Shown in pieces: positions 6,318 through 53,682 of a stretch of 56,633 nucleotides of DNA (position 1 is the stretch's first letter; every line of letters starts with the position of its first letter). The position numbers and the translations under genes are program-made. Source of the stretch: Basidiobolus meristosporus CBS 931.73. Its lineage: Eukaryota > Fungi > Basidiobolomycota. The stretch lies in contig MCFE01000577.1 in assembly GCA_002104905.1 (NCBI GenBank), positions 1-56,633 of the forward strand. The letters are read 5' to 3'. The notes beneath the pieces are model-generated. The model was given only the letters and a program-made list of their open reading frames with translations, did no database searches and had not been told where the DNA came from.

Positions 6318-6336
6318 TGTAGAGAGTGGCAGCTTG

Positions 6337-6348
6337 GGGCTCATAACC
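6337..6348 (-). promoter_or_regulatory. Primer-binding site GGTTATGAGCCC, complementary to the tRNA-iMet anticodon arm
   Basis: 3 nt inside the 5' LTR end; reverse complement of GGGCUCAUAACC of fungal initiator tRNA (Ty5/copia-type priming). Confidence 0.85.
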
Positions 6349-6649
6349 TATTGTAAGAGTCTTGGAGATATTGCAAGAGATTGGGAGGACAAGTAGATTA
6401 TGTGGTTCTAACTTAATGATTTATTGAATGTAAGAGTAGTAATTATACTATTACATGGTCTTGGAATAAAAAGCACATAGAATTAGCTATGAAAGGTCCC
6501 CAGAACATGTGTGCAAAGTTGGAGGCTATTTTGACAACTTTGAGGATTTTCATGTTCTGGGTACCTGGTACTTTGGAGAAAATATTCTAAGTAAATCCAA
6601 ACAAGGAATTTGGTCAGTATTCTCTAGGACTTGAAGGTAATGATCTAAC

Positions 6650-7230
6650 TGACTATGATGTGTGATTATTTAGGTGGAGTTACAAATTTTCACAACCATT
6701 GCCTCTTTTTCACACTCATTACTTCCTGACTCAACCAATTCTCTTACATTTTAGGCATACAGATTGGTTTATTTCTGATGCAACTTTAGTTGTACCTCAA
6801 TGGCCAGTTGTACTGACCTTTAAAAGTCCCTCTGTCCAACACTAACATAAAGCTCAACTCCACACTCAGCAAGTAACTCCATTAAAATCCACCACTCAAT
6901 AAGTATTTCTATTATAATGCTCTGTTTCCATTACTTTTGCAAGAACTCTGCAGCTTTATGCCACTGTTTATTCACTGGTTCCCATACATCATAGGCTTCA
7001 GCTGGCACTGCAAGGTCCAGCACCTCATCTGCCAGTCTTTGCAATAAATCCTTACAATATTCAAGTGTGTTTTCTTGAGCACTGCACTTAAAGAAGTGCT
7101 GCACCTGTTGGACTGTCTATCACTGTCTCAAAATTCCAATATAAGCTTTGTCATAGTCTGCTGAGTTCTTGACACTGTTGCTTTGCCTGTCAATGGGATC
7201 TCCACTCTGTCTATAATGGAGGATGTGGAG
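6650..7230. repeat. Unclassified dispersed repeat, copy 1
   Basis: Aligns by eye to ~21950-22570 and partly to ~49250-49460 (e.g. CCCCACACTCAGCAAGTAACTCCATTAAAA and GCACCTCATCTGCCAGTCTTTGCAATAAA blocks). Confidence 0.75.
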
Positions 7231-7249
7231 GTAGTGGCTGACAAGCACT

Positions 7250-10217: not shown

Positions 10218-10403
10218 AATAGAATTTTTCTGTTGTATAGTGCCACATAGTGCCAGCCTGTTTATAGTGCTAGATAAATCTGGCACTCTATTGCACCATC
10301 TGGCACTAAAATATCTACCATCATGCCAGTGGTAGGATATAGTCACTGGTAATTTTATTTAATCTTACTTATGTTGCTCAGAATAGTGCTTTCCTTGTGT
10401 TAT

Positions 10404-11288
10404 TTATTCTTCATAATGCTCCAGACACATTTCTCTCAGTGGATATCTTCTTGTATGAATATACTGTGCATTGATAAGTATCTTAACTATTTTACCTATT
10501 CTGCTGTTTTCACCTATATAAGACTTTCCTCTATATTTATCAGCCAGTATGCCAAATGTCTTCAGATATCCAAATGTATGCTCTACCCTCACTCTGAAAT
10601 GATTAAATATCTCATTGTAGAGCTTCTATTTCCTGCTCAGCACACCATTCCTTGGCTTCCTATATGCTCTAATACATCCTAATCTCTGCCAATCCTCTCC
10701 TATATAAACTAAGTCTGCCATATATTTCTCCCCTCTACTGAGTTCTGGAGGCTTCTCTACCCAGAGTGCTGTGTCATGTCTACTTCCAGCAAATGGCCCA
10801 CTAAACCAGAAGATGTTACCCTCAATGTCAGACAGTGCTTGAAACTTCACACAGTGTGCTTTGAACTTGCAAGAATAAAGGTGCTTCTGCCCTCTCAAAG
10901 CTCTGTTAATCCTGACTGGGAAGGTATCAAAAATACTCCTGTTATGGAAGCTGTTGCTGAACACTCTGGGATATGAAAGTCTACCAGAGCTTCTGAACCT
11001 AGTATTCCAAGCTTGCTCTAAGTCATTCAAACCCTCTGCAAAGTGGTACTGCATTGCTCTTAGCTGGGAATGAAAGCTTCTAGGACTTTTGTGGTCATGG
11101 ATAGTAGGATGAAACCTTGTGAGGCAATAGTACTTGTAATAGCAGAGAAGCTTAACAAAGGAGCTCCTTCAGTAGATTGAGGTAGATGGTCCACAGTACT
11201 ATGTATAGATCTCCTCTAGTGTATCAAGAGGGAATCCAGTAGTAGTGATGGGATTGATGAGAAAGGACCAATCAGATGAGTAAGTCAT
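10404..11288 (-). pseudogene. DDE_Tnp_4-like transposase of copy A
   Basis: DTFPVRINR...YSCKFKAHCVKFQALSDIEG...GPFAGSRHD...MADLVYIG...YRKPRNG...RVEHTFGYLK; broken by stops. Confidence 0.85.
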
Positions 11289-12890
11289 ATTAAATTTGGT
11301 AGGTGATCAGGCTGAGGTGAATTGAATTGGTGCTATCAGCTTTATTTATCTCATTTTCCATGCATTATGATTGAATCTCCATCAATTGCCATTTATCCCA
11401 TCATTATGTTGCAAAAATCATCCTCAAACAATGATTTATTATATTTATTGATACTTTACTCACAAGTCTGTAATTAAATAGGAAATCTGCAATTGATGGG
11501 ATCCAAGATGCATCATGCATAAAATATGCAAAACTTAGCAATCAAATTGATTTTCATGTATATTTCATATAAGACCAGGCTGATGCCAATAAACTGCCAT
11601 ATAAGTATCCAAATTTGTCACTATGGTCCCTTTACCAAGTCACAACTCATATTTAGTACAACCCAGACAAAACCCATCCCCCAGCCCACAAGTGTGGTCC
11701 AGACCAGAGAAGTCAATATTGGATCCATTCAAGTTCTTGCCAAATAATTTTAGTATGGCCCAAGTGTCTATGATGGCCTTCATACAGATATTTGGGCACA
11801 ACTCATGAATCTAGCAGAATTAGATACCTCAGAGAGTTGACAAAAGATGGAAGAATCTGAGTAGAAAGCTGTGGCATGAGTTCTACATCAAGATGCCAGC
11901 AGATGTATGTAAGAAGATAATAAGCAAGACAAGTATTGAAATCAAGAATGAGCTGAGAGTGAGGGGATTTGATGAGGAAGCCACATGGGAGCAATTTTGT
12001 GCACAATTTGCACAGCACAGTGTAGTGGGGTCACAATGACACCCATTGACAGATGTGCTCATTCCCATATTTTCTACATGCCTATTTCTCTACTATACTT
12101 GTTTTAGTTTTATCCCAATTGTCTTACCTGATCAGTACTATCTCATATGCTGGTTGACTATCACAACTGCTTACCTTATTGCATAAGTTATCCTTCACTT
12201 TATGTAAGATTACTAGCTGTAAGTGCTTCTATATTAGGCAAGTACCTGGCCCAGTACCCATGACACATGATCAACCCATTTCACCATCCCTACCATTTCC
12301 ATACCATACATGGTATCCCTATGTTATGCAGGTTTCAGAGTACAGATTCCTGATTGGCTAGATGTACTGTGCCTCTTAGAATCTTCTGGCACCTACTTAG
12401 AATACTCTTAGCTCATTCTGATGTCATTAAGATTCCTATTGATAACCAGAACCTTCTGGAACACCATGATTAGTAATCACTTAGCCAGTGAGAAAAGTAT
12501 ATAAGGGAGGCAATCCCTCAACAATAAATCATTGTCCCTTTTATCAATATACCAACTTGTTGATTAGTGTGATCACTGGTACCTGCTGCTAACTGAACTT
12601 CCAACCCCAGACCACAGGACACTCCCAGGAAACCATGCTGACAGCCAACTGACCTTGGATGCACTACTTACAAGGAATACTCAGAGTAGGTATCTTTTAT
12701 TATATTTTATTCTTTCCCAAGTTTGTTCTTGTACAGACAAAGATACTTTTCTGTCTTTGTAACTATTGACCACAGCTGCATTCTCATCAAGTCCCTGTGG
12801 GTGGAGTTTACAGTTGTTTTAACTTTGGAAGCTTTAGTACATTATTATCTCAAGGGACACTGAGCCCAGCACATTCTTTTATTAAGACGC

Positions 12891-13962
12891 TGTAGTGGGG
12901 TGACAGTGACACCCACTGACAGATGTGCTCATTCCCTTATTTTCTACTTCCCTATATCCCTACTACACTCATTTTAGTTTTATCCCATTTGTCTTACCCA
13001 ATCAGTACTATCCCATAAGCCGGTTGACTATCACACCTGCTTACCTTATTGCATAAGTTACCCCTCACTTTATGTAAGATTACTAGTTACAAGTGCTTCT
13101 ATATTAGGCAAGTACCCGCGCCAGTACCCGTGACACATGATCAACCCGTGTCACCATCCCTACCATTTCCATACCATATATGGTATCCCCATGTTACACA
13201 GGTTTCAGAATACTGATTCCTGATTGGTTGGATGTGCTGTGCCTCTTAGAACCTTCCAGCACCTACTTAGAACATTCTTAGGTCATTCTGATGTCATTAA
13301 GATTTCTATTGAACTCCGGAACCTTCTGGAACACCATGATTAGTAATCACTTAGCCAGTGAAGAAAAGTATATAAGGGAGGCTATCCCTCAACAATAAAT
13401 CATCATCCCTTTTATCAATATACCGACTTGTTGATTAGTGTGATCACTGCTACCTGCTGCTACCTGAACTTCCAACCCTAGACCACAGGACACTCCCAGG
13501 AAACCGTGCTGACAGCCAACTGACCTTGGAGGCACTACTTGTGAGGAATACTCAGAGTAGGTATCTTTTATTATATTTGATTCTTTCCCAAGTTTGTTCT
13601 TGTACAGGCAAAGATACTTTTCTGTCTTTGTAACTATTGACCAAAGCTGCATTCTTATCAAGTCCCTGCTGGTGGAGTTTACAGTTGTTTTGACTTTGGA
13701 AGCTTTAGTACATTGTCATCTCAAAGGACGCTGAACCCAGCACATACTTTTGTTAAGACGCCAACTAAGTTGGGGATTGTAGCTCAATAGTTTTCCCTTG
13801 ACAAGCTTGTGGCTTTATTCCCCTTCACATTAGATTAGAGACAGAACCCAAGTATTCCTAGCAAGCTTTTGCCAGAGGTTATCGCACCCAGTGAACACCC
13901 CACACACAAAACACTTGAGAAGTGTTGGACGTATCTCTCCCTTGGACTTATACACCACCACA
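12891..13962 (+). repeat. 5' LTR (1072 bp)
   Basis: TG...CA; offset 6105 from the 3' LTR; by eye only two differences (13258 vs 19363; 13507 vs 19612). Confidence 0.97.
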
Positions 13963-13966
13963 TATT

Positions 13967-13984
13967 TGGCACCCAACGTGGGGG
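13967..13984 (+). promoter_or_regulatory. Primer-binding site, tRNA-Lys type
   Basis: TGGCACCCAACGTGGGGG versus the canonical Lys1,2 PBS TGGCGCCCAACGTGGGGC; the internal mismatch is a CG>CA change. Confidence 0.88.
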
Positions 13985-14102
13985 GTTCATACAAGCTCCC
14001 TAGGACCCAACAAGATTTACCTGAAGATTTGAGCTGTTATCCACCTATTGAAAAGAGACTACCGATATTACCAAGATTACAACACCAACCTACCTGCCCA
14101 AC

Positions 14103-17100
14103 ATGAACTCTATGCCATTACCACTCTCACATGGAGCCCCACAGTTTGATGGAAAGAATGTGGAAAGCTTCATATTCAAATGGGAGAAGCTCTGCAAGAT
14201 GTGCAGCCTATCTGAACAAGAAATGGCTGAAGACTTCCCCTACTACTGCACCGATGATATTACCACTAAGCTTCTCAGACAAGGAGACATTCTCACTGAC
14301 TGGGCCTTAATGAAGACCTACCTACAGACCAAGTATGGTAGACCCCAGATATACTATGGAATTGAAGACCTCAGGCACTTTGGAAGAACTGGACTTTCCA
14401 AGCTACCACTTGAAGAGTTCATTCAACAGTATGAAGATATGGCCAAGCCACTCCTAGAGTCCCAGGCTATAACTGAGTTTACCATGATACTTTACCTTGC
14501 ACAAGGGCTTCCCCAGGACTTGGCAAGGAAAGTTGACTTATATGCAGCCAAGAATGACAAGTCTGGCATTCCTTGCTTTGCAGAGATCAAACGTGTTCTC
14601 CTAGAGGCAAAGCAAACTTCTACCTTTATGAGACTCCTGACATCTAATCTGCCAGACCAGTCAACCAAGGAGCCAAGGAGTGCTGCTGCTGACAATCAGA
14701 CCTACACTACCGACAGAATTGACCAACTTGCTGAACAGCTACAAAAGCTAGCCCTCAAGATTAATGGCTCAGCTGAGGTTGCTACTGAGGGACAAAGACC
14801 TTTGCCCAGGCACTGCATCTGGTGTGACTCTACTCAGCATGCCAGACGAGAATGCTCAGAGCTTAGCCAGCTACTCAGAGAAGGAGCAGTACAGTTTGAT
14901 GCTGATGGAATGCTTGCTGACAAGGAAGGAAGAAGGATTCCCACTAATTTCCAAAGAGGAGGGATGAGAGCCCTTTTCCAGAAATCTGACTCAGCAACCA
15001 GAAAGATTACTGTTGATGCCCCTATTGGGACTCATAAAGTGAATTCAAGCAGCTCTGACAACAGACAATATGAAGTTGATGCCTTTGCTACCAAAAGACA
15101 CCTCCCTGAAGAACCTGCCAAACCCATCCTTAGAAGACCACAATTTGAAGAACCTGAAGTTGTTATTGACAAGAGGCCTAGTATGCTGCCCACCCAAGAT
15201 CCATTGCCTCACTTTCAGATGACCTCAAAGATAGCAAGCTACTCAAGCCCTCAACTGATTACTGAGAAGCTGCTGAAGCAGAACCTCACTTTGTCAGTTG
15301 GAGAAATCATGAGTGTATCCCCATCTGTTAGGAAGACCTTTGATGAGCAGCTTAGAACAAGACGACAAGCTGTTGAACATATGGACACTCATATAATTCA
15401 GACAAACCATGAAGACCACCAAAAGGATGACAACACTACTGAATATAAGACCTTCTACTCAGTTGCAACTGCTGTGGTGAAAGGGTATATATATGATGAC
15501 CCTGTTGACTGCCATATTGACAGTGGCTCAGAGATTTGTGTTATGCCGCTAGACTTCTGGAAGACACTTAAAAGCAAGGAGCTACTGCCTGTTGATAGAG
15601 ATATTGGATGGAACATGACCGATGCAAACTCAGGATCTAGTCCACTCTATGGTGTAGTACACAAGTTTCCTATTGAGGTACAAGGAATCAAGGTCTGGCT
15701 TCCCCTCTTCATCTGCCAGAAGGCAAACTTTGACCTACTGCTAGGTAGACCATGGGAAACCAGTACTAAGGCTACAACTACCAACTATTCCGATGGGTCA
15801 GTATGGTACACCATACAAGGATCCAATCCAGGACTACAGTCAACCTTCTGTGGTGTAACACCCAACAATAAGAGGACACATACTGCTTGCCAGAAGGCAC
15901 ATCTTGTTATGGAAGAAGATGAAGAGCCTGACAATATACACCCCAACATTTGGAGCTGCTCATTAGGTATACAGGAGCAAACAGCTATGGTTCGAACAAA
16001 ATACAAGACAGTAGAACAGAAGATTAGACCATCACTTACACCTTTGACTGATGGATCCCGACCTGCTGATTACATTAGACCACCAGAAGAAACACCAGAT
16101 GATACACGACTTACACCTGAGAGACTTAAGCAACTTATCATTGGTGATGGAAACCTTACACCAGAGGAGATACTATTATTTAAGGAGACCTTGAAAAGGC
16201 ATGATAAGGTCTTCTCATATAATGACAAGGAGATGGGACTCTTAAAGACATCGGTTGAAAAACCCATCAAGATTCATACAGTGCCCCACACACCCTGGTC
16301 ATTTAAGCCTTACCCACTGCCCAGAGGACTCCAAGCTGATGTGCATGACCTACTTAAGAAGAAGATAGAAGCTGGTATCCTAGAACCTTGCCATGGACCC
16401 TATGCTAACAGATGGTTTGTGACCAAAAAGAAGAATGGAAAGCTCCGATTCATTCAAGACATGCAACCTGCAAATGCTGTCACTATCAGAGATGCTGCTA
16501 TACCTCCATCTATTGATGACTTTGCAGAAAGCTTTAGTGGCCACTCCATCTACTCAACATACGATCTCTACTCAGGATATGACCAGATTCCCCTTGATGA
16601 GACATCAAGAGATATGTTTGCACTACAGACACCATTTGGACTATTAAGGATGACAAGACTCAGCCAAGGGGCTACAAACTCCGTGGCTCAGTTCCAGAGA
16701 TGCATGGTGAATGTGCTATACCAGTTTATACCTGAGAAACTTGCTGTCTTTGTGGATGACATAGGCATCAAAGGATCAAAATTCCGGGACACCACTGAAG
16801 TTATGCCTGGAGTAAGAAAGTTTGTCTATGACCATATTGCAGACAATGATGCCATATTAGGAGCCATTGAAGAAGCTGGACTCACCATCAGTGGTGAGAA
16901 AAGCAGCTTTGGTGTATCAGAGATATCCATTGTTGGACAAAAATGCAACACCTTTGGTCGCTCACCTGGAGACTCCAAGACACAAAAGATATGCAACTGG
17001 CCTACCCCCACAAATCTAACACAAGCTCGTGGCTTTGTGGCAGCTTGTGGGTTCTTTAGGATCTGGATCCCAAGATTTTCTGAGATAGCAGAACCAATCT

Positions 17101-18956
17101 ACCGACTACAGAGAAAGAATACCCCATTTATCTGGGGAGAAGAGCAAGAAGAAGCCATGCAATTACTGAAAGAGGCCTTAGTATCTCCACCAGTTCTAAG
17201 ACCTCTTGACTATCAAAACACTGAATGCCCACCTATTTTGACAGTGGATGCAAGCCCCATAGGAGCTGGAGCACTACTTGGACAAGATGATGAAGATGGC
17301 AACCGCTATGCCTGCAGATATGAGAGCTGCCTATTCTCTCCTAGAGAACAAAGATACTCACAGATTAAGAGAGAACTACTAGGAGTTGTGAAGATGCTGA
17401 GGAAACTGAAGTCACAACTCTACATGACACATTTTATCCTGGAGACAGATGCCAAGCCACTTATAGGAATGATCAACAAGCCTGACCTACCTGATGATGC
17501 CACAAACCGATGGATGGCATGGCTGAAAATGTTTGACTTTGAGGTCAAACATATCCCTGGCAAGACAAATGTTGTGGCTGATGCACTCTCCAGGAAGGGA
17601 CCACAATTATTTGAAGACTTGGACCCTCACTTTGATGATATTATTGATGCAGAGATCCGACAGATTGCCATCAAAGACCAAGAGAGAACTACCTGGAGTC
17701 TGATCAAGGAATATCTAAGGACACTTAAGAAACCTAGTTGGATGGATATTCAGGAGTTTAGAAAACTCAGGAAGAAGGCACACCACTACTATCTTAAAGA
17801 TGATCTTCTCTTTAAGCGAGTGAAGCCTGGACTTATGCCAAGAAGAGTAGTCACCACCCCTCAAGAGCAACTGAACATCATGACAAGTATCCACCAAGGA
17901 GAACCAGGAGGACATAGAGGACGAGAAGCCACATACAATACCACAGCTCAGAGGTACTACTGGGAAAACATGTACTATGATATCCAGCACTTTGTTGAGT
18001 CATGTGTAGCCTGCCAGAAGAGATCCTCCAAGCGTTATGAAGAACCACTGCATCCTACTTACACAATCTGTCTATGGCAAAAGGTTGGTATTGACCTTGT
18101 CCACATGCCAACAGCTGGATCAAAAAAGTACCTGATTGTTGCTAGAGATGACCTTAGTGGATGGGCAGAGGCTCGAGCCTTGCCCAACAACAAGAGCCAT
18201 ACCATATGGAGATTTATACTTGAAGACATCATCTGCAGATTTGGCTGCATCCGACAGTTTGTTGCTGACAGAGGAGAGATGACATCCCAAATGATCCAGG
18301 AGTTGTGCTCAAAGTACAAGATACACATAGCTTTCACAACAGCTTACCACCCTCAAGCCAATGGAATGATAGAGAGAGGACATGGACCATTGGTGAACTC
18401 TCTTGTCAAGGCCTGTGAGAATAACACAACACTGTGGCCACAGCAATTACATCTTGCACTCTGGGCAGATAGAATTACTACCAAGAGAACAACTGGATTA
18501 TCGCCATTCAAGCTACTCTATGGACATGACTGCATACTACCAGTTGAGTTAAACACAGTCACTTGGAACTCATTGAATTGGAGATCCAATATGCAGACTG
18601 AAGACCTCCTTGCAACTCGCATACAGCAACTTGATCACCATGACTTGAATATTAGCAGAGCTGCTGAACAACTTAAGGACACACGACTAAAGAACAAGGT
18701 GCCCTTTGACAAATCACACCCAACAAGGCCAAAACCACTATCACTAGGAGACCCAGTATTACTCTATGATTCTACCTTGGACAAGCAATGGAGTCGGAAG
18801 TTTGACAACAAATGGACTGGCCCCTACCTCATTTCCAAAGTGATTGGAAATGGAAGTTATTACATATCTGAGCTTGACAACACCCAGTTGAGAGCACCAG
18901 TTGCTGGAAATCGACTTAAGTTATTCAAGCATAGGAATTTTGCACATCAAGATTAG
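14103..18956 (+). CDS. Gag-Pol polyprotein, 1617 aa, single ORF
   Basis: Gag; zinc knuckle CIWCDSTQHARREC; DUF4100-like segment; protease HIDSGSEI; RT YDLYSGYDQ and VFVDD; RNase H TVDAS, ETDAKPL, VADALSR; integrase H-H-C-C (GGHRG...CVACQ) with D-D-E core (GIDL, ADRG, MIERGH); GPY tail; no chromodomain. Confidence 0.97.
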   Translation: MNSMPLPLSHGAPQFDGKNVESFIFKWEKLCKMCSLSEQEMAEDFPYYCTDDITTKLLRQGDILTDWALMKTYLQTKYGRPQIYYGIEDLRHFGRTGLSKLPLEEFIQQYEDMAKPLLESQAITEFTMILYLAQGLPQDLARKVDLYAAKNDKSGIPCFAEIKRVLLEAKQTSTFMRLLTSNLPDQSTKEPRSAAADNQTYTTDRIDQLAEQLQKLALKINGSAEVATEGQRPLPRHCIWCDSTQHARRECSELSQLLREGAVQFDADGMLADKEGRRIPTNFQRGGMRALFQKSDSATRKITVDAPIGTHKVNSSSSDNRQYEVDAFATKRHLPEEPAKPILRRPQFEEPEVVIDKRPSMLPTQDPLPHFQMTSKIASYSSPQLITEKLLKQNLTLSVGEIMSVSPSVRKTFDEQLRTRRQAVEHMDTHIIQTNHEDHQKDDNTTEYKTFYSVATAVVKGYIYDDPVDCHIDSGSEICVMPLDFWKTLKSKELLPVDRDIGWNMTDANSGSSPLYGVVHKFPIEVQGIKVWLPLFICQKANFDLLLGRPWETSTKATTTNYSDGSVWYTIQGSNPGLQSTFCGVTPNNKRTHTACQKAHLVMEEDEEPDNIHPNIWSCSLGIQEQTAMVRTKYKTVEQKIRPSLTPLTDGSRPADYIRPPEETPDDTRLTPERLKQLIIGDGNLTPEEILLFKETLKRHDKVFSYNDKEMGLLKTSVEKPIKIHTVPHTPWSFKPYPLPRGLQADVHDLLKKKIEAGILEPCHGPYANRWFVTKKKNGKLRFIQDMQPANAVTIRDAAIPPSIDDFAESFSGHSIYSTYDLYSGYDQIPLDETSRDMFALQTPFGLLRMTRLSQGATNSVAQFQRCMVNVLYQFIPEKLAVFVDDIGIKGSKFRDTTEVMPGVRKFVYDHIADNDAILGAIEEAGLTISGEKSSFGVSEISIVGQKCNTFGRSPGDSKTQKICNWPTPTNLTQARGFVAACGFFRIWIPRFSEIAEPIYRLQRKNTPFIWGEEQEEAMQLLKEALVSPPVLRPLDYQNTECPPILTVDASPIGAGALLGQDDEDGNRYACRYESCLFSPREQRYSQIKRELLGVVKMLRKLKSQLYMTHFILETDAKPLIGMINKPDLPDDATNRWMAWLKMFDFEVKHIPGKTNVVADALSRKGPQLFEDLDPHFDDIIDAEIRQIAIKDQERTTWSLIKEYLRTLKKPSWMDIQEFRKLRKKAHHYYLKDDLLFKRVKPGLMPRRVVTTPQEQLNIMTSIHQGEPGGHRGREATYNTTAQRYYWENMYYDIQHFVESCVACQKRSSKRYEEPLHPTYTICLWQKVGIDLVHMPTAGSKKYLIVARDDLSGWAEARALPNNKSHTIWRFILEDIICRFGCIRQFVADRGEMTSQMIQELCSKYKIHIAFTTAYHPQANGMIERGHGPLVNSLVKACENNTTLWPQQLHLALWADRITTKRTTGLSPFKLLYGHDCILPVELNTVTWNSLNWRSNMQTEDLLATRIQQLDHHDLNISRAAEQLKDTRLKNKVPFDKSHPTRPKPLSLGDPVLLYDSTLDKQWSRKFDNKWTGPYLISKVIGNGSYYISELDNTQLRAPVAGNRLKLFKHRNFAHQD

Positions 18957-18981
18957 TTTGCTTTGACCCAAGTTCAAAGCT

Positions 18982-18995
18982 GAGAGGGGGGTGGA
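18982..18995 (+). promoter_or_regulatory. Polypurine tract
   Basis: GAGAGGGGGGTGGA immediately before the TG of the 3' LTR. Confidence 0.9.
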
Positions 18996-20067
18996 TGTAG
19001 TGGGGTGACAGTGACACCCACTGACAGATGTGCTCATTCCCTTATTTTCTACTTCCCTATATCCCTACTACACTCATTTTAGTTTTATCCCATTTGTCTT
19101 ACCCAATCAGTACTATCCCATAAGCCGGTTGACTATCACACCTGCTTACCTTATTGCATAAGTTACCCCTCACTTTATGTAAGATTACTAGTTACAAGTG
19201 CTTCTATATTAGGCAAGTACCCGCGCCAGTACCCGTGACACATGATCAACCCGTGTCACCATCCCTACCATTTCCATACCATATATGGTATCCCCATGTT
19301 ACACAGGTTTCAGAATACTGATTCCTGATTGGTTGGATGTGCTGTGCCTCTTAGAACCTTCCGGCACCTACTTAGAACATTCTTAGGTCATTCTGATGTC
19401 ATTAAGATTTCTATTGAACTCCGGAACCTTCTGGAACACCATGATTAGTAATCACTTAGCCAGTGAAGAAAAGTATATAAGGGAGGCTATCCCTCAACAA
19501 TAAATCATCATCCCTTTTATCAATATACCGACTTGTTGATTAGTGTGATCACTGCTACCTGCTGCTACCTGAACTTCCAACCCTAGACCACAGGACACTC
19601 CCAGGAAACCGCGCTGACAGCCAACTGACCTTGGAGGCACTACTTGTGAGGAATACTCAGAGTAGGTATCTTTTATTATATTTGATTCTTTCCCAAGTTT
19701 GTTCTTGTACAGGCAAAGATACTTTTCTGTCTTTGTAACTATTGACCAAAGCTGCATTCTTATCAAGTCCCTGCTGGTGGAGTTTACAGTTGTTTTGACT
19801 TTGGAAGCTTTAGTACATTGTCATCTCAAAGGACGCTGAACCCAGCACATACTTTTGTTAAGACGCCAACTAAGTTGGGGATTGTAGCTCAATAGTTTTC
19901 CCTTGACAAGCTTGTGGCTTTATTCCCCTTCACATTAGATTAGAGACAGAACCCAAGTATTCCTAGCAAGCTTTTGCCAGAGGTTATCGCACCCAGTGAA
20001 CACCCCACACACAAAACACTTGAGAAGTGTTGGACGTATCTCTCCCTTGGACTTATACACCACCACA
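18996..20067 (+). repeat. 3' LTR (1072 bp)
   Basis: Near-identical to 12891-13962. Confidence 0.97.
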
Positions 20068-21949
20068 ACGCCAACTAAGTTGGGGATTGTAGCTCAATAG
20101 TTTTCCCTTGACAAGCTTGTGGCTTTATTACCCATCACATTAGATTAGAGACAGAACCCAAGTATTCCTAGCAAGCTTTTGCCAGAGGTTATTGCACCCA
20201 GTGAACACCCCACACACAAAACACTTGAGATGTGTTGGACACATCTCTCCCTTGGACTTATACACCACCACAATGGGCTGGACATGTCTGTTAGTGCTTC
20301 AACTTTGGGAACTAAAGAGATTTGAATACGTTTTGCCTCAAATGACTAATGAGTGCATGATATATTAGTAGAGCTAAGTGGCTTCCAAGAGCAATATACA
20401 CAGGACTCATCCAGGCAACAGCTCCAAAGTATCAGACAGAGGGTCAGTGAATACCTTGAGGAATCAGATGGTGAGCTTCAAGAGGAAGAATATAGACCAC
20501 AAGCAACAGCATCTAGATTGCTCCAGCATGTCTTGCTGGATTCCTTATAATCCCTTGCAACTTCAGTTTGCTGGCACACATCAGTCTAAACTACACCAAC
20601 ACCCTTCACAAAAGCGGCCCACATCAAGTCAATGCATGTAGAGTTAATGTGCTTGTTTCTGAGCCAACCACCAGAACTTGCCAAACTGCTCATTTAGACA
20701 CAAGTCCATTGGAGCAGGCCAAGTTGCATCACTTAGCGGCATCACATTGAACTCAGCCAAGGGCCATGCCAGCTCATCCATTTATGCCTGCACATGCCAT
20801 TACACCTCACCATCAGCAAGGTTGCTGCAGGTGTTACTATATGTAGTTGTCTGGCAGCATCAGACCATAGATTCTTCTGTTATATGGGTTATAAAGAATA
20901 CCCATGATAGTAGTGAGTAAGCAGATAAAGAGATATAATTCTATATTGGAACATATAAATGTTATATAGGGCAATAGAAAATGAAATATCATTCAGTAAG
21001 CTGATATGGTGGCATTCTAGATACTAGCTGTAGGCTGTTATACTTCCATGATCTTGCCAACCAAGCCCCACATGAAGGCTGACAAAGCATCATCAAGTTT
21101 TCCCTATTTATGGCAAACACATCCCTCTGAGAAATAATGGAATGAGCATATCAAAAGGCCATTGCATGGTTCAAATCCCATGAGTAGAAGATAGTGATGT
21201 AATTGAAACACTGTGCACAAACCACTAAAGAGCTGTACCTTAGATTCCACAAAAAACCTGGTCAAAAATCTCTTCACATCTATTCCTCAGTTGCTTTAGA
21301 TTGGTTCTCTGTTCATTTTGTCACATTCTGATTCCAGAAACTCAATCTCTTCTTTTGTCTGTATACCCTTATTGGCTATTGCATTTTTTTCATGCTCCTT
21401 ACTTCCAAGTGCAATAGAAGGTCTAGCTTTCCATACAAAGAAATTGGTTCATATGTATCAAATCCTCTGTGACAGCTGAATTACAGATTAAAATGATATA
21501 TCTAAGTCCATATACCCAACACCTGCATTTTGCCCAACTATAACAAGTAACTCTGTTAAAATTCACCAAAATATATATCTACCATAAAGCCCATTTTTCA
21601 TAACATTGACAGGAACCCTATGGCAGTCTACCTAGCCTTTAGCAGATACTCTACAGTATTTTGCCATTTCTTAGTCACTGGCTCCCATATATCATGGTCT
21701 TCAGCCAGCACTACAAGGCCTATTACTTTATATGCCAGCCATTGGAGCAAATTCTTTCAATAGTCAAGTATATTTTCTTGACCCTATGAGAAATTATTGT
21801 GATGATCCCATCAAACAGCCGTCACAGATTTAAAGTCCCAAGACTAAGAGATATTGAACCCATCAGGACACTGTATAGAGACCATTGAAAAATAATTGCA
21901 CCACGGATTTCACAAAAAACTTGGTCAGAATTTTCATCACCACAATATA

Positions 21950-22570
21950 TAAGTGGCTTTTGATTGATTCCCTACCAACTTGCTCACTTTTTGATTCTGG
22001 ACACTTGATCACCTCCTATGTTTGTGTACATTGACTGGCCATTGCCTCTTTTTCACATTCCTAACTTCCTGACTCAACTATTTCTCTTACATTTCATGCC
22101 TAAAAATGGATATATTTCCGTTGAAACTTCAACTGAACCCCAATTGCCAATTTTATTGACCTATACAAGTCCCTACACCTTAAACTAACATAAAGCCCAG
22201 CCCCACACTCAGCAAGTAACTCCATTAAAATTCACCACATAATAAGTATTTCTGTTGTAATGCTCCGTTTCCATAACTTTGGTGGGAACCCAACAGCTTT
22301 ATGCCAATGTCATTCACTGGTTCCCACACGTCCTGGTCTTCAGCCAGCATGGCAAGGTCTAGCACCTCATCTGCCAGTCTTTGCAATAAATACTTGCAAT
22401 ATCCAAGTGAGTTTTCTTGAGCACTGCTCATGAAGAAGTGCTGCAGCCTCTTGTTGTGCCTATTAATGTGCCAAGGTTCCACTGGAGGCATTGTGATAAT
22501 CTTTTGAGTTGTTGACAGTGTAGACTTGTCTGTTGGTGGGATATCCACTCTCTCAACAGTGGAGGATATG
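21950..22570. repeat. Unclassified dispersed repeat, copy 2
   Basis: Homologous to 6650-7230 in the same orientation. A ~110-bp module at ~22312-22420 also recurs at ~21670-21780. Confidence 0.75.
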
Positions 22571-22859
22571 GAGGCTGTGGTAGACCAGTTGCCTTTTCTG
22601 CAAACTCATCTACCTTGCTGGAGTGTAGCTCAAATGGCTGCACTTCCAACCTGTGTGAAAAGAGCTGTTTTCTGGTTGGTAATTTTTCTTGGCTATGATG
22701 GGATTCAGTCTGTTCCAGGCCTGCAGCATTAATTAGCAAGAACTGCAGTACTTTCTGCATGCTTCACTGTCTCAGGCTTGGGTAGAAATTCTTCCTTTAC
22801 CTTTTCCTTGATTACTAACTGGTCTTTCAATGCTACATTGTCTGAGTGCTTCTTGTACC

Positions 22860-23225
22860 CTAAAAAAAATAAGAAAAGGCCAGTAAAATACCATCATAAT
22901 ATCAGCTGAAATCCAAGTTTCTCCAAATTGATAACTTTCAATATCTTTGTTGTTAGCTGGTGGGCAGGCAAGCAAACTGATTCTCCAGGAGGAGACTAGG
23001 CCAGCAAGCATCCATGCCAAGCTTTATAATTAGCTGCCCATTACTTATATTAAGAGCTGCATTTGAAATCTTGAGCCAAAAATATCAGCAGCATACCAGC
23101 AAAATACCATTAGAATACCATTAGAATACCATCAGAACACCAGCAGAACACCAGCAGAACACCAGCAGAATACCAGCCAGAAATCAGATGAACTCCAAGT
23201 ATGAGATATTTCATAGGGGTAATGA
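22860..23225. repeat. Fragment homologous to the Copia-1 LTR interior, with an 11-bp tandem array
   Basis: Reverse-complement match to ~1880-2210; seven AGAA(T/C)ACCA(TT/TC/GC)-type units at 23101-23177. Confidence 0.8.
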
Positions 23226-23599
23226 ACTACATTTTCTCCTTGATAAATTCTGCTCTGATGCATCTATTTTGGCCTGCTTGTCCCTTACTGGCACTCTCCT
23301 GACCACCTGATGTTTCTTTGCTGCTTGTTTTAAGCTCTCAGCCATAGTTGCGATGGGCTTCTAAGAAAGCACTGGTTTTCATCACTGCAAGGTCCTTCAC
23401 TGCTACTTTGACTGATTGCTTTTTAAGTGGTACTACACTTTTCCTTGAAAAATGTTGTGCTGTGCATCCATGTCTGCCTGCTTGCCCCTTGTTGGCACTC
23501 CTCCAGCTACCTGACATCTCTTTGACACATGCTTGGAGCTTTTGGCCCTGCTTCTAAAGGGCTCTTGAGGAAGCTGCTAGTTTTTAGCCATGGCACCCT

Positions 23600-24582
23600 T
23601 GTTATTTGGCCTTTGATAGTTTTGGCTATTCCTATGATACTTTCTTAGTATACCATTGCTGGCCCAAAATCAGTTTGCCTGCTTGAATCCATGATAATGC
23701 TCATGGAACCAGTCAAGTACATACTGCTTGGCCTTGGGTTCCTGATGGACCCATGGTATGCCAGCCTTAAGATGATGGTGTGCTAGACTTCTGATGGCCT
23801 CCTGAATATTAGCCCACTCTTCATTATTGCACTCAATAGCTTTACCAATCTTCACTGTCTATTGATTTTTAGGCTTTGGTATAGACAGCACATTGTCTCC
23901 CTCCCATGCAGCAATAGATTTTTCTGTGGGCTTTATCTTTGGGCACTGTAGTTGTGCTTCAAAGACTGTAGAGTTTTCCTTGCTGTTACATCAAGAAATG
24001 GCTCAATTCTTGACTGTGACATTGAGCTACTTGAGTTCCTTCTTTGCAGCAAAGATGCTGCTTTCTCTTCCTGTGATATTGATTGCTCTACATGTATTAT
24101 CTTCTCATCCTGTTTCTGGACTATTTCCTGATTTCACTGGGCCATTGCATCTATTCAATCAGCCACTGCACCTAATTGCTCTTTAATGCTTTGGTATGTG
24201 CTGACAATATACTTGCTAATATGGGTGGTGGTGATGTTAGGATAGACACCTGCTGGTCTTCAGCTGAGGGTACTGCATTTGCTACATTCTCATCTTCCTG
24301 AGAACAATAGTCAGCTTGCAACACCACAGAAGTGCTCAATTGCCTACTTGACTGAGAGCCTGAGGAGTCTGCATAATTACCTTCAGTGGGCACACTGTCA
24401 ATGTGGCCTTTTTTGGATGTAGCCCTGCTTATTACACTGAATGTCAAAGCAAGCTGTTGTCCAACTGTCCTTCTGCTGCCATCAGTGGTAGGGTTTAGTT
24501 GAGAACCAGACAATTTTACTTTATTTTTTGGCTGCATATATATGGAAGTGAGCCAAACCAAAGAGAAAATAATTTTACACAT
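23600..24582 (-). pseudogene. Decayed transposon accessory ORF divergent from a CACTA-type transposase
   Basis: Low-complexity N-terminus (24172-24582), then EEWANIQEAIRSLAHHHLKAGIPWVHQEPKAKQYVLDWFHEHYHGFKQAN*FWA. A partial homologue lies at ~45300-45530. Confidence 0.45.
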
Positions 24583-24739
24583 ACATGTGTATGTGGAGCC
24601 GCAACTTTATTTATAATGCTTACTATGGTAGGTTATTATTGAATCTGAGATTCATGTAGGTGCAATGTCTCAAATACAAGACTGTCCTAAACTCACATGA
24701 GCATTGACCAGAGAGTAATATGACAGCGTTACATTATTG

Positions 24740-25340
24740 AAGGCCAGACTGTTTGCCCCATGGACAAGACTGCTTTGATTCAATGCCATAAGAGAAGAGA
24801 AATAAATCCATGTGGCTATTGTAGCAAGCTTCTCAGCCATGAAGCATGCAGTCAGCATAGAAAATATTACAGGGATCACAGCCAGTGTTTTGCCACACAA
24901 GTCATATTTGACCATTCATCAGTACTACTGTGTCTCTATTATCTTGCCAGCCAGTTGATACTTCTATATTAGCACCTGGCCATCTTTGTCACCTTGCACA
25001 ACTGAGTCAGGTGCATTTGTGATGCCATTAGGCTCACTGATGAATTGTGAGTATATCTCCACTATCAACAGTACCACACATGAGCCTGGTCAAGTCCCAA
25101 TATGCAATAAGATAACACCCACTGAAATAATTGCCAGGGATACTTCATGGAGTCAAGTAAGCCCAGTAATCCATCTACTGGTGAATGGAGTAAGGATGTT
25201 ATTACAGAAGTGGCACATTTCCACTGATATCAGTAATGGGGGCTTTGAGGATTTATTACTACTTCTTGCCAAAATCATTCTATATAAGATGCTTTTTATA
25301 CATGGCATCCAAAATTCATCAGGATCTCATGTTAGATGAA
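24740..25340 (+). pseudogene. 5' fragment of a second CACTA-type transposase copy
   Basis: Inverted homologue of ~9700-10217 (NPCGYCSKLLSHEACSQHRKYYRDHSQ vs ESCRQYRKYYKDYSQ; KWHISTDISNGGFEDLL vs KWCVSTNIINGDFDDLL). Confidence 0.7.
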
Positions 25341-26002
25341 AAGTGCAACTTCTTATTCATTGGCAGCTGGTTCAGCTGTAGCCACTGACCACTTGGTGGC
25401 ATGGTTAATTGCTACTAGGATCCACCAATGGCACTTCCTAGCAGCAAGCAGTCTCCGAGCAAAGTCAGTTCCCCATCTCTAAATAGTCTTACAGACTCCA
25501 AGGGAAAGAGCTCAGCAATTGTCTGTGGTTGGCTTCTGTTGATTTGGCAGCTTGGGCATGTTTTCACTAGCTTCTCAATATTTGGTTTCATTCTGGGCCA
25601 CAATGCTCTTGCTTTCACAGAGCTATAAGTTCCTTCAATTCTAAAATGTCCATATTCATTATATAGCTTGTGTATTAATTCCAAGCAGGCAACATAGTGG
25701 AAATAGTCAATAGGGCATCCATCAACTATTTGGTAGAATGTTACATCCTGTATTAGAAACTTGCTGGCTTTATCCCTGACAGTTTTTTTGATATCATCAT
25801 TGACCTCACTAGGAATGACTTTGTCCTCCAAATACTTGGGTAACAAGCTGGGCCAATCTGACTTATGCACCAGGTTGAGTTGTGCAACTTGTTTTAGCCT
25901 TGATAAGGTGTCAGCAAACATGTTACTTGTCCCTGGGCAACAGACAATCTCCATGTCAAATTGCTGAATGTATTACTTCATCATATAATTCATCTGGATA
26001 GT

Positions 26003-26712
26003 AGACTTGCACTCTTGGATAGTGCCAAATGCTGCCATAGTGTGCCAGGGGGGCCAAGTGGACCAGTGCTTGGTCATAGAGTGGGAAGCAAAATTCATCA
26101 TCTTCAAGCAAAGCAGCCCCTACATTTCACCTGTTGTGCTGGAGAAAATCCATTTTTTGACCTTTTTTCTTGGATCAATGTTGTGCAGGATGTATAAGAG
26201 GACATAAGAACTGAAGACATGCATCTGGTTCTCTGTATCCATGGCACTTTGAATCTGGCTCTGGTGGCTTGTAACATGTCACAAAATGTATGGCTCTATC
26301 TTGGTCCACTGGTACTATCTGGCACTATACGTGTTTTGTTTATATTTTACTTTGGGGCTAATATATAAATATAGGGCCAGATAGTACTAGTGGACCAAGA
26401 TAGTGCCATACATTTTGTGACATGTTACAAGCCACTGGAGCTAGATTCAAAGTGCCATGGGTAATGAGTGCTAGATTCATATCTTCAGTTCTTGTGTTCT
26501 CCTACACATCCTGCACAAGAGCAATCCAAAAAAGGTCAAAAAATAGATCTTCTCCAGCACAACAGGTGAAACACAGGGGCTGCTTTGCATGAATATGTAG
26601 AACTATGTTTCACACTCTGCGGCCAAGTACAGGTCCACTTGGCTGCCCTGGCACACTAGTGCATCACTTGGCACTCGTGGCTCAATGTGGCACTATTCAA
26701 TGGAACAAATCT
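26003..26712. mobile_element. Foldback MITE of the PHIS family, TSD AGT
   Basis: ~330-bp inverted arms around a short AT-rich spacer; ends AGACTTG.../...GGAACAAATCT; AGT at 26000-02 and 26713-15; interrupts the Gypsy-2 RNase H. Confidence 0.88.
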
Positions 26713-27211
26713 AGTACCTTCTGGGTAAATATATATTTGAGTGATATATGATCAGTCTTCACAATGCACTTGACTCCTTCAATATAGAGTCTCCATGTCT
26801 TTAAGCAGTGTATCATGGCAAGCATCTTCTTCTCATGCAATGGATAGTTTTGTTCTGCTGAGTTTGGGTTCTTGGATTCAAAAGCTACTAGGTATTCCTT
26901 TCCCTTATGTTCTTGGCTAAGTACTACTCCAAGCAAATAATCAGAGGTCAGGAGCTCTCAGGTTTGGCAGGTTTATTTCTGAGCATCTGAAAGGCAGTCT
27001 CACAGGCTATATCCCACTTTAAGGTATTAGACTTGTTCCATTGGATAGTACCACATAGTGCCAGCCTGTTTATGGTGCCGGATTGATCTGGCACTCTACG
27101 GCACTATCTGGCACTATAATATCTACCATGATACCAGTGGTATGATACAGTTACTGGTAATTTTACTCAATCTTACTTATGTTGCTCAGAATAGTGCTTT
27201 CCTTGCTTTGT

Positions 27212-28094
27212 TTACTCTTCATAATGCTCCAGACACATTTCTCTCAGTGGATGTCTTCTTGTATGAGCATACTGTGCATTAATAAGTATCTTAACTATTT
27301 TACCTATTCTGCTGTTTTCTCCTATATATGACTTTCCTCTGTATTTACCTGCCATTATGCTGACTCTCTTCAGATATCCAAATGTGTACTCTACCCTCAC
27401 TCTGAAATGACTAAATATCCCATTGTAGAGCTTCTGCTTCCTGCTAAGCACACCATTCCTTGGCTTCCTATAAGCTGTAATACATCCTAATCTCTGACAA
27501 TCCTCTCCTATATAGGCTAAGTCTGCCATACATTTCTCCCCTCTACTGAATTCAGGATGATTCTCTACCCAGAGTGCTTTGTCATGCCTACTTCCAGCAA
27601 ATGGCCCACTAAACCAGATAATGTACCCTCAATGTCAGACAGTGCTTGAAACTTCACACAGTGTGCCTTGTACTTCCCTAAATAAAAGTGCCTCTGCCCA
27701 CTAGAAGGTCTGTTAATCCTCACTGGGAAGGTATCCAAATACTCCTGATATGGAACCTGTTGCTGAACACTCTGGGATATGGAAGTCTATTCAAGCTTCT
27801 GAACCTAGTACTCCAAGCTTGCTCTAAGTCATTCATACCCTCTGCAAGGTGGTTCTCCATTGCTGTCAGCTGGGAATGAAAGCTTCTAGGACTTTTGTTG
27901 CCATGGATGGTGGGATGAAACCTTGTAGGGCAATAGTTCTTGTAATAGCAGAGAAGCCTGACAAGGGATCTCCTTGAGTAGATTGGGGTTGATGGTCCAC
28001 AGTACTTGGAATAGATCTCCTCTAGTGTGTCAAAAGGAAATCCAGTGGTAGTGATGGGATTGATGAGAAAAGACCATTCAGATGTGTAAGTCAT
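27212..28094 (-). pseudogene. DDE_Tnp_4-like transposase of copy B (frameshifted)
   Basis: ORF pieces 27720-28094 and 27212-27529 plus the intervening KFQALSDIEG/GSRHD segment; frameshift near the DTFP motif. Confidence 0.88.
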
Positions 28095-28453
28095 ATTAAA
28101 ATTGATGGATGATTGTATAAAGGCAATTTGAATTGATTTGGCGCAATCTGCGTTATTTATCTGATTTTTAATACATTATGGTTAAATTTCCATCAATTGC
28201 CATGTATCCCATCATTATGTCGCAAAAATCATCTGCAAACAATGCCTTGGTACTTTTATTGATGCTTTAATCATAGGTCTGTAAGCAAATAGGAAATCTG
28301 CAATTGATGTGATCTGATCCGTGTCAACACAATCCAAGAAGCATCATGCATAATATATGGAAAATTCAACAATCACATTAGTTTTCATATATATTTCATA
28401 TAAGACCAGGTTGATGCCAATATACTGCTGTATAAGTATCCAAATCCATTGCT

Positions 28454-30508
28454 ATGGTCCCCATACCAAGCCTCAACTCATCTTTAGTACAACCCAGACA
28501 AAACCCATCCCCCAGCTCACAAGTGCGGTCCGGACTGGAAAAGTCAATGTGGGATCTGTTTGAGTTCTTGCCAAATGATTTTAGTATGGCCCAAGTGTCT
28601 ATGATGAGCCTTCATACAGATATTTGGGCACTACTGATTAATCTAGCAGAACTAGATACTTCAGAGAGTTGATAAAGATGGAAGAATTTGAGTAGAAAGC
28701 TGTGGCATGAGTTCTACATCAAGATGCCAGCCAATGTATGTAAAAAGATATATAACAAGACAAGTATTGAAATCAAGAATGAGCTGAGAGTGAAGGGATT
28801 TGACAAAGAAGCCACACAGGGGCGATTTTGCGTGCAATTTGCACAGTACGGGCCGGACACATCCATTTGTGCCTCAACTTTAGGAACCAAAGAGATTTTG
28901 AATGAGTTTTTGCCTCAAATGACTAATGTACTACGTGATATATTAGTAGAGCTAAGTGGCTTCCAAGAGCAATATACACAGGACTCATCCAGGCAACAGC
29001 TCCAAAGTATCAGACAGAGGGTAAATGAATACCTTGAGGAATCAGATGGTGAGCTTCAGGAGGAAGAATACAGACCACAAGCAACATTGTCCAGATTGCG
29101 CCAGCACGCCTTGCTGGATTCCCTGCCATCTCTTGCAACCACAGCGCGCTGGCGCTGTGGTGGTGTAGAGGTACTCCTGGGAGAAGCTACACTACTCAAG
29201 GTGTGTGAGGAGTCTGATGGGTGCAATAACCTCTGGGTCTAAACTGCTGGTGTCTTTGTCAATATGTCTCTATGGTAAAAGCTCCTGCTTCTCTAGCTTC
29301 CTAGGTGCTCCAAGTGTCTCCAAAGGCCTCTGTGTGTCTTGTGCACTACCCTGAAAAGCTCCTTGATGGCAGGTCTGAGATGTACTGTTGAAGGCAGGTG
29401 CAGTGATCAACTGCTAATCAATAAGGGAGAAGTGTTACTGATAGAAGGGATGATTTATTGATGAGGGATTGCCTTCCCTTAAATACTTTTCCTGATTGCC
29501 AAGTGATTACTAATGACAAGGTTCTAGAAGATTCTAGGCATCAGTGGAATTCTTGATGACATCACTATGGGCTAAAAATATGCCAAGAATGTCCTGGAAG
29601 GTTCTAAAAGGCACAGCACATCCAACCAATCAGGGATCAGTAGTCTGAAACCTGTGCAACATAAAAATACCATATATGGTATTGAATTGGTAGGGATGGT
29701 AACACAGACCTAGGTCATGTGTGACGGGTACTGACGTGGGTACTTGCCTAATGTAGATACAAATATAGATCACAAAGCTGAATAACATCTGGGATAACTA
29801 ATGCTAATAACTAATCAGGGTAAACATCAAATGGGGATAATACTAACAATATGGGCAAGAGAAGAATGGGATAATACTGATAAGATAAAATATGAATGAG
29901 TATATCATAATGACTATATGAATAAACTTTTCTGTGGGAGGTATGTTTACCCTACCACAGCGCACGTCAGTCCAGAGTACGCCAACATCTTTACCAGAAC
30001 ACCCCGCATCAAGTCAATGCGCGTCGGGTCAACGCGCGTGCTTCAGAGCAAAACTACAAGAACTTGCCAAACTGCTCATTTAGACACAAGTCCATTGGAG
30101 CGGACCAAGTCGCATCAACTTGCAGCATCACATCAAGCTCAGCCAAGGGCCATCTCAATGTGTCAAGGTGCACCTGCGCGTGCTGTTTTGCCTGACCATC
30201 CGCAAGTTACTTCTGGTGAACTGACTGATGATGACCAACATGAAGTGCCTCAACCACCGGAGCCCTTGGCAAGCAAAAGAACGCGTCAGTGCGTGGCACT
30301 ACAGGCCAGTTCAGTTGGTTCAGTTGGAGCAATTCAGCGTGGCCAAGCTGTAGCATTGCACTCATCAACTAGGAGGCAAAATACTGACTACAAATACACA
30401 AGTAGCCAAGATAATAGTCAGCCAGGAAGTAGTATAGGTGTGCAAAGTGAGTCACTACCAAATGCTCTAGTAGTAATCCCTGTGAGAAAAAAACCCAGGA
30501 GAAGATAA
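28454..30508 (+). pseudogene. Second ORF (ORF2) of copy B, unknown function, interrupted by a solo LTR
   Basis: Pieces 28454-28672, 28688-29155 and 29964-30508. The stop at ~28672 is a sense codon in copy C (ORF 40367-40912). Confidence 0.75.
29156..29959 (-). mobile_element. Solo LTR of a sister lineage of the intact Gypsy, TSD GCGC
   Basis: On the minus strand TGTGGTAGGG...TACACCACCACA; core (~29620-29760) strongly similar to ~13105-13255. GCGC at 29152-55 and 29960-63; the empty site in copy C has a single GCGC. Confidence 0.92.
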
Positions 30509-36070: not shown

Positions 36071-36073
36071 ATT

Positions 36074-36807
36074 AGAACTGTTCCGTTGGATAGTTCCACA
36101 TTGAGCCATGAGTGCCAAATAGTGCCATAGTGTGCCTGAGAGTCATAGCAGACCTAAACTTGGCCACAGAGTGTGGCATATAGTTCTTCATATTCATGCA
36201 AAGCAGCCCCTGTGTTTCACCTACGTTGCAGGAGAAAATCAATTTTTTAACCTTTTTTTTGGGATCAAAATTGTGCATGACATAAAAGAGCACAGACAGA
36301 CTAAAGATATTGATCTGGTACATAATACCCATGGCACTCTAAATCTAGCCCCAGAGGCTTGTAGCATGTCACAAAAATGCATGGCATTATCTTGGTCCAC
36401 TGGTACTATCTGGCACTATATTTAAATTTAAGCCCTAAAGTAAAACCTATACAAAGCACTTATAGTGCCAGATAGTACCAGTAAACCAAGATAATGCCAT
36501 GCATTTTTGTGACATGCTACAAGCCTGTGGGGCTAGATTTAAAGTGCCATGGGTATTATGTACCAGATCCATATCTTCAGTCTGTCTGTGCTCTTTTATG
36601 TCATGCACAATTTTGATCCCAAAAAAAAGGTTAAAAAATTGATTTTCTCCTGCAACGTAGGTGAAACACAGGGGCTGCTTTGCATGAATATGAAGAGCTA
36701 TATGTCACACTCTGTGGCCAAGTTTAGGTCTGCTATGACTCTCAGGCACACTATGGCACTATTTGGCACTCATGGCTCAATGTGGCACTATCCAACGGAA
36801 CAAGTCT
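36074..36807. mobile_element. Foldback MITE (734 bp), TSD ATT
   Basis: Arms 36074-36420 and 36461-36807 with about 11 mismatches in 347 bp by eye; 40-bp spacer; ATT at 36071-73 and 36808-10. Confidence 0.93.
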
Positions 36808-36869
36808 ATTATGCCAAGAATTTGTCTCTTTCAACTTGACTCAATTGGATATATATATATATCTCACTC

Positions 36870-53680: not shown

Positions 53681-53682
53681 GT

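Follow-up and report, generated by a model that had tools for sequence, protein, structure and literature searches.

A Ty3/Gypsy retrotransposon lineage in Basidiobolus meristosporus integrates at 4-bp targets with a central CG

Sequence-specific integration has been stated to be exclusive to the Drosophila errantiviruses and their derivatives (2017 review, PMC5408687). Within that group, the ZAM/Tirant subgroup uses a palindromic CGCG target and generates a 4-bp target-site duplication (TSD) (PMC5408687), and target specificity follows the phylogeny of the integrase (PMC5408687, PMC3276498). In the retroviruses with a 4-bp TSD, the intasome bends its target sharply, unstacks the central dinucleotide and favours a flexible pyrimidine-purine (YR) step, and specific integrase residues contribute base contacts (PMC4422553, PMC4005685). 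Here we describe a Ty3/Gypsy element in a stretch of 56,633 nucleotides of Basidiobolus meristosporus CBS 931.73 (contig MCFE01000577.1, forward strand; the whole stretch is called the window hereafter), the lineage of which inserts into 4-bp targets that have CG as their second and third bases. Our literature searches found no described fungal or other non-errantivirus case of such sequence-specific integration, in agreement with the original prediction made from the sequence of the window, which knew of no fungal case; the 2017 review likewise limits such integration to errantiviruses.

The focal lineage is like the ZAM/Tirant errantiviruses in its sequence-specific, palindromic, CG-containing 4-bp target, but the resemblance is functional only. 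ZAM and Tirant carry three open reading frames (ORFs) including env, have AGT...AnT ends and use CGCG, whereas the focal element has one ORF, TG...CA ends and a target in which only the central CG is fixed (NCGN); its closest named relative is from a fungus (Smittium culicis), unlike the Drosophila errantiviruses. With prototype foamy virus (PFV), murine leukemia virus (MLV) and other 4-bp-TSD retroviruses it shares a weakly palindromic target and a flexible central YR step, and would share a symmetric intasome (PMC4422553, PMC4005685). The retroviral YR preference is mild (~63% enriched) and CG is not singled out, whereas in the focal group CG was used at about 80% or more of the sites, although its background frequency is 0.4-5%. 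The Copia elements of arthropods that encode a captured methyl-CpG-binding domain (MBD) are also CpG-linked, in their case to methylated CpG-dense DNA (PMC6673714), but the focal polyprotein has no MBD. Chromoviruses, of the same superfamily, integrate non-randomly through a C-terminal chromodomain, which the focal element lacks. Ty3, again of the same superfamily, uses contacts with TFIIIB, and the central dinucleotide of the TSD is fixed neither in Ty3 nor in the chromoviruses. The focal group would be a second, independent Ty3/Gypsy group with sequence-specific integration.

Self-comparison and reading of the sequence delimited an intact long terminal repeat (LTR) retrotransposon at 12891-20067 (Table 1). 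The two LTRs were 99.8% identical, and both of their two differences were CpG decays (CG>CA at 13258 and CG>TG at 13507). The LTR termini were TGTAG...CCACA, i.e. TG...CA, and not the errantivirus type AGT...AnT (PMC5408687). The single ORF occupied the internal region (13963-18995), in which neither a third ORF of the errantivirus type (env) nor a remnant of one was found. Pfam matches on the polyprotein comprised a weak Asp_protease (residues 451-548), RVT_1 (775-946), RT_RNaseH (1011-1144), Integrase_H2C2 (1253-1309) and rve (1328-1417). The integrase consisted of a zinc finger, a core and a GPY/F-like C-terminus, with the protein ending ~30 residues beyond the GPY/F-like motif, and it read F-V-A-D-R-G-E-M after the second catalytic Asp. 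No chromodomain (PF00385) was matched in the last 217 residues, even at E = 10, and Pfam scans of the whole protein and of its N- and C-terminal parts gave no MBD, SRA, CXXC or other extra domain. The LTRs, primer-binding site (PBS), polypurine tract (PPT), order of the Pol domains and 4-bp TSD all identify the intact copy as a non-chromodomain Ty3/Gypsy element (Metaviridae). The lack of a chromodomain had been claimed beforehand, and the Pfam results (RVT_1, RNase H, Integrase_H2C2 and rve, without chromodomain) bore this out.

Three insertions could be read in the window, and all three targets were centred on CG. The young element lay within a solo LTR that its own family had left earlier, and the two parts of this older LTR overlapped by exactly 4 bp (LTR positions 868-871), as a TSD predicts. 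Of the 14 CpGs in the young LTR, the older one retained a single CpG, at 12888, and the young element had inserted exactly there. The two flanks of the older solo LTR are no longer identical; ACGG is the sole sequence that yields both by one CpG-type transition each, and its target was reconstructed accordingly. The third insertion belonged to a sister family (79% identity to the focal family over 369 nt, with the terminal ACACCACCACA in common) and consisted of a solo LTR. BLAST and terminal-motif searches gave no further copies of the focal or the sister family in the window, so that three of three is the full count and not a selected subset. The three CG-centred TSDs named in the original prediction (ACGC, GCGC and the reconstructed ACGG) were confirmed, including at the paralogous empty sites.

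The host repeat hit by two of the insertions was a DNA transposon of ~3.4 kb with perfect 16-bp terminal inverted repeats (TIRs; TAGACTTGTTCCATTG ... CAATGGAACAAGTCTA). The older solo LTR was 91.3% identical to the young LTR over 870 nt in part 1 and 97.1% identical over 205 nt in part 2; of its 82 differences from the young LTR, only 12 were decayed counterparts of CpGs in the young LTR. The unequal divergence of the two parts may reflect faster divergence of U3 between subfamilies, or gene conversion.

Table 1. Features of the window, with the target-site flanks of metagenomic relatives (positions refer to the window; copies A to C are paralogs of the TIR transposon)
Feature	Position	Strand	Details
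5' LTR, intact element	12891-13962	+	1072 bp; begins TGTAGTGGGG, ends CACCACCACA
PBS-like sequence TGGCACCCAACGTG...	13967-13984	+	4 nt past the 5' LTR; resembles the TGGTGAACCCGACGTG PBS of metagenomic relatives
Single ORF, 1617 aa	14103-18956	+	gag (DUF4100), protease, reverse transcriptase, RNase H, integrase
PPT GAGAGGGGGGTGGA	18982-18995	+	abuts the 3' LTR; relatives carry the same GGGGGTGGA tract
3' LTR, intact element	18996-20067	+	1072 bp
TSD ACGC, young element	12887-12890 and 20068-20071		identical on both sides of 12891-20067
Older solo LTR, part 1	12021-12890	+	LTR positions 1-871 (BLAST); ends in ACGC, the left TSD copy of the young element
Older solo LTR, part 2	20068-20272	+	LTR positions 868-1072 (BLAST); opens with ACGC, the right TSD copy of the young element
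Left flank ACAG, older solo LTR	12017-12020		decayed copy of ACGG
Right flank ATGG, older solo LTR	20273-20276		decayed copy of ACGG
Empty site ACGG for older solo LTR	28848-28851		copy B
Empty site for older solo LTR	40515-40518		copy C; ATGG on the reverse strand (decayed ACGG)
Sister-family solo LTR	29156-29959	-	in its own orientation TGTGGTAGGG...ACACCACCACA
TSD GCGC, sister solo LTR, left copy	29152-29155		sequence reading
TSD GCGC, sister solo LTR, right copy	29960-29963		sequence reading
Empty site GCGC for sister solo LTR	40211-40214		copy C
Homologous empty site, decayed to GCAC	20574-20577		copy A
TIR transposon, copy A	10218-12020 and 20273-20817
TIR transposon, copy B	27025-29155 and 29960-31252
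TIR transposon, copy C	42226-38930		reverse
TIR transposon, partial	45901-46704
5' flanks of relatives			CCGT (L015), CCGC (L017), GCGG (L034), ACGT (L037), CCGT (L048), ACGG (L049), ACGC (L075), ACGT (L078), ACTT (L065)
3' flanks of relatives			ACGT (L017), ACGG (L018), ACGT (L046), ACGT (L038), CTGC (L027), ATGT (L056)

The window contained 231 CG in 56.6 kb, corresponding to a CpG observed/expected ratio of 0.10 and a CG frequency of 0.0041 of dinucleotides, with an excess of TG+CA of 1.36. The rarity noted earlier, about ten CG between 1 kb and 12.9 kb, was matched by the exact count (10 at 1000-12900). Three CG-centred targets out of three have a probability of ~7e-8 at the present CG frequency, and of 6.6e-5 if CpG observed/expected is set to 1. 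TG+CA, at 0.163, was 40 times commoner than CG in the window.

Flanks across the genome were tested on contigs from public sequencing runs. Logan contigs of four runs (X1 to X4) were aligned to the 3' LTR with short flanks (window 18900-20110), and thousands matched. Variant positions among the LTR copies in these contigs were mostly C>T and G>A, often adjacent, the hallmark of CpG decay. Before the LTR start, the consensus of the loose ends finished in A-CCGC in 86 contigs of X1 and 114 contigs of X2, and the other 26 consensus positions were A/T at 24 (X1) and 21 (X2); the overall agreement of this consensus was only 0.36, indicating that the flanks were diverse. In X4 (organism B), the flank before the LTR start ended in ...ACGG and the flank after the LTR end was GCGG. 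After the LTR end, contigs that matched the first one or two bases of the reference continued as A+TGG (15) or AC+AG (18), the two decay products of ACGG, while the remaining contigs showed CCAT (X1) and CTGT (X2), decay products of CCGT, the complement of ACGG. These junctions were CG-centred or decay forms of CG. One contig joint ran from LTR end through GCGG into a diverged LTR interior, indicating a nested insertion; another, at high depth, ran from LTR end through ACGG into an LTR start, which fits a new copy entering the TSD copy of an earlier insertion.

Relatives of the element were retrieved by a search seeded on the Pol half of the polyprotein, which gave hundreds of proteins at 41-47% identity, the best named one being from Smittium culicis. 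The whole polyprotein, in a search that took its seeds from the gag half, gave nothing above 32% identity, the exact focal protein had no record in protein databases, no copy of the same family came from these databases, and the LTR-terminus pattern gave 0 matches in metagenome contigs. The residues that follow the second catalytic Asp separated the relatives into two types, A-D-R-G-E-(L/M/V), which includes the focal element and Smittium, and D-G-G-x-E-N; the D-R-G-E integrase group is a grouping defined in the present analysis. An alignment of the A-D-R-G-E type retrieved 80 metagenome loci. In these loci the 3' LTR always opened with TGTCGTG directly after a GGGGGTGGA PPT, and the 5' LTR closed with ...CGACA, a TGGTGAACCCGACGTG PBS following within a few bases. 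The focal element fits the traits of the group in its motif, its PPT (GAGAGGGGGGTGGA vs GGGGGTGGA) and its PBS (TGGCACCCAACGTG vs the type TGG..ACCC.ACGTG). An outer LTR end was accepted only if homology to the PPT-defined start or the PBS-defined end reached exactly the terminal base; this anchoring was used instead of the hit ends of all-against-all BLAST, which were swamped by coding-region matches.

The validated flanks of the D-R-G-E relatives had a central CG in 12 of 15 cases, TG in two and another dinucleotide in one (p = 1.2e-13 against a background CG frequency of 0.051, and p = 7e-11 at the highest per-locus CG frequency). The flanks all differed and therefore represent separate insertions. 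CpG observed/expected in these loci was mostly 0.6-1.2, and TG+CA had a frequency of 0.126 (2.5 times that of CG) and TA of 0.053, yet CG was at the centre in 12 of 15. Two further ends with the flank ACGG (L065 at 220 and L030 at 192) could not be validated by a homolog and were kept outside this strict count. Relatives with D-G-G-x-E-N or other motifs had the TSDs ACAC (L002), ATGG (a solo LTR in L004), CTAC (L007), CCAA (L083) and TCGG/TTGG (L060); all five centres were YR steps, and only one of the five was CG. The D-R-G-E motif is correlated with the CG-centred trait. A quick IQ-TREE tree, the root of which is unsure, gave a D-R-G-E-L clade with SH-aLRT support of 100% and a D-G-G clade with 99%. 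The target had originally been proposed as RCGS; that is too narrow, since CCGC, CCGT and ACGT also occur, and NCGN describes the data better.

Some contigs were set aside as sources of TSDs. L001 (32% identical) had the disagreeing flanks TCGA and CCAC, is probably recombinant or nested, and was left uncounted, and contigs L008, L009, L010, L012, L040, L042, L045 and L047 were tandem or wrap-around assemblies without flanks. The LTRs of L017 (582-1742 and 7497-8440) were only ~76% identical, with the flanks CCGC and ACGT; two elements, both inserted at CG-centred targets of their own, have probably recombined at this locus. A subgroup with the motif M-R-A-D-R-G-E-L (L008/L009, L010, L013, L021, L067), represented by tandem or short contigs, had CpG observed/expected of 0.2-0.5 and a GC content of 40-45%. 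It resembles the genome of the window in its CpG depletion, and the hosts may be related.

Taken together, CG-centred targeting looks intrinsic to the integrase, and we consider it likely that the enzyme itself prefers N-C-G-N and reads it directly, without a requirement for methylation. In this model, the integrase would make a 4-bp staggered cut with a strong preference for N-C-G-N, the CG lying exactly at the centre. A two-fold symmetric intasome would read the target directly, using the deformable YR step at its centre, to which base-specific contacts with both central C:G pairs would be added. Such base-specific recognition appears to be needed, because CG was chosen although TG+CA was 40 times (window) or 2.5 times (relatives) commoner. 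Direct readout by the integrase is suggested by the CG always falling at TSD positions 2 and 3, by the trait tracking the type of integrase across hosts, and by the lack of an adaptor domain. The trait would be common to relatives with D-R-G-E after the second catalytic Asp, with CpG methylation unneeded. The host genome has lost ~90% of its CpGs, which makes targets rare, and new copies would settle wherever a CpG survives, for instance in young repeats or in the TSD copies of earlier insertions, with nested and back-to-back elements as the predicted outcome.

Several points weigh against this interpretation. Of this exact lineage, no more than three insertions could be read base by base, and the relatives share only 42-47% identity in Pol. 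The correlation with the motif has an exception in each direction: L060, which is more distant and without D-R-G-E, has TCGG/TTGG, and L065, which carries D-R-G-E, has the flank ACTT. In the tree, the focal and Smittium rows were unresolved at the base, outside the D-R-G-E-L clade, so that the trait need not have a common origin. The contig flanks are a plurality consensus without per-position frequencies; X1 to X3 come from a single sample, possibly the one from which the window was assembled. X4 is organism B. The Glu of the motif, three residues after the Asp, aligns with PFV Ala188, and the motif may therefore be a marker and not the reader of CG. The D-R-G-E residues were downgraded as candidate CG readers, because the aligned PFV Ala188 touches bases outside the TSD (PMC4422553).

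A first alternative, which had been part of the original prediction, is that the integrase or a partner requires 5-methyl-CpG, so that copies enter silenced repeats and the unmethylated CpGs of genes are spared. All three targets in the window were in transposons (the TIR element and the older LTR), and the repeats lose CpG in the manner of methylated CpGs, with C>T and G>A dominant and both LTR-LTR differences at CpG; the targets were thus probably methylated at the time of insertion, and the integrase probably tolerates methylated CpG. There is also a precedent in the arthropod Copia elements with an MBD (PMC6673714). However, the window is an island of transposons, in which repeats are expected as targets under any mechanism, and selection against genic insertions accounts for the same distribution. 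The focal polyprotein had no MBD, SRA, CXXC or other extra domain in the Pfam scans, and relatives with the same motif used a central CG in loci without CpG depletion. The latter favours a methylation-independent readout of the sequence, although the lack of decay is no proof of a lack of methylation. We therefore regard methyl-CpG homing as improbable, and it is similarly doubtful that, in this genome, methylated CpG is the better or the sole substrate of the CG-specific integrase. If it did, the marks of silencing would serve as a homing signal into silenced repeats and away from unmethylated genes, a safe-haven strategy without a chromodomain or an MBD.

A second alternative, to which we give about the same low standing, is that a host CpG-binding protein, and not the integrase, places the intasome on CpG. 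Tethers give Ty3 base-pair precision at Pol III start sites, and a host factor may also act here. Against such tethering, the CG was always at TSD positions 2-3 across many hosts and at least two LTR families, the trait followed the sequence type of the integrase and not the host, and the Pfam scans found no adaptor domain in the polyprotein.

It is very unlikely that the integrase has only the generic preference for a flexible central YR step seen in PFV and MLV, the run of CG being luck of sampling. Such a preference is established for 4-bp-TSD retroviruses (PMC4422553), and nearly every TSD centre in the wider group was CG, TG, CA or TA (the ACTT of L065 apart); but all three targets in the window are or were CG in spite of the great surplus of TG+CA there, and the relatives had CG in 12 of 15 although TG+CA and TA were as common or commoner in their loci. 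An artefact, with LTR ends misplaced or CG arising after insertion, has a negligible probability, since the paralogous empty sites carry the same 4-mer just once and already have the CG, the outer TSD bases vary, and the LTR ends were set by PPT, PBS and LTR-LTR homology.

Direct readout of NCGN by the integrase, the reading that we favour, would tie the spread of the transposon to the CpG content of its host: decay of methylated CpG removes targets, while each insertion copies its own target and could in this way seed back-to-back arrays. In a CpG-poor genome the predicted landing sites are the few sequences that retain CpG, e.g. genes and young repeats. The D-R-G-E and D-G-G integrases offer a natural contrast for locating the residues that choose the target, and integrases with a defined target could perhaps be developed from one that recognises NCGN. 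The first 1 kb of the window held 37 CG and the following 12 kb held 10; per kb, genes would therefore offer a CG-specific integrase many more targets than old repeats do. At 45-404 on the plus strand lies the end of a Peptidase_M16_C (QCR2-like) gene.

The TIR transposon was present in three to four copies, which were 84-93% identical but differed greatly in the CpGs that they retained (3, 53 and 30 CG), and its ORFs had no Pfam match. An older, decayed Gypsy element is interrupted in its pol by copy B (26709-26957 and 31246-31911, minus strand); one and the same relative was matched by tblastn on the two sides of the copy, at residues 543-628 and 285-508. More Gypsy remnants were present at 25478-25972 and 34838-35496. 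An old Copia element occupied ~1500-7000 on the minus strand, with RVT_2 at 2726-3517, an integrase core and SH3-like domain at 4169-5098, and CpG observed/expected of ~0.03. This remnant (~1.5-7 kb) was considered as a control family within the window, but its LTRs were too decayed to place their ends and it gave no control TSD. Clusters of direct and inverted repeats of 70-96% identity were found at 36070-37267, 43534-47157 and 50833-56633, and an inverted pair of 96% identity was formed by 51564-52506 and 56633-55694.

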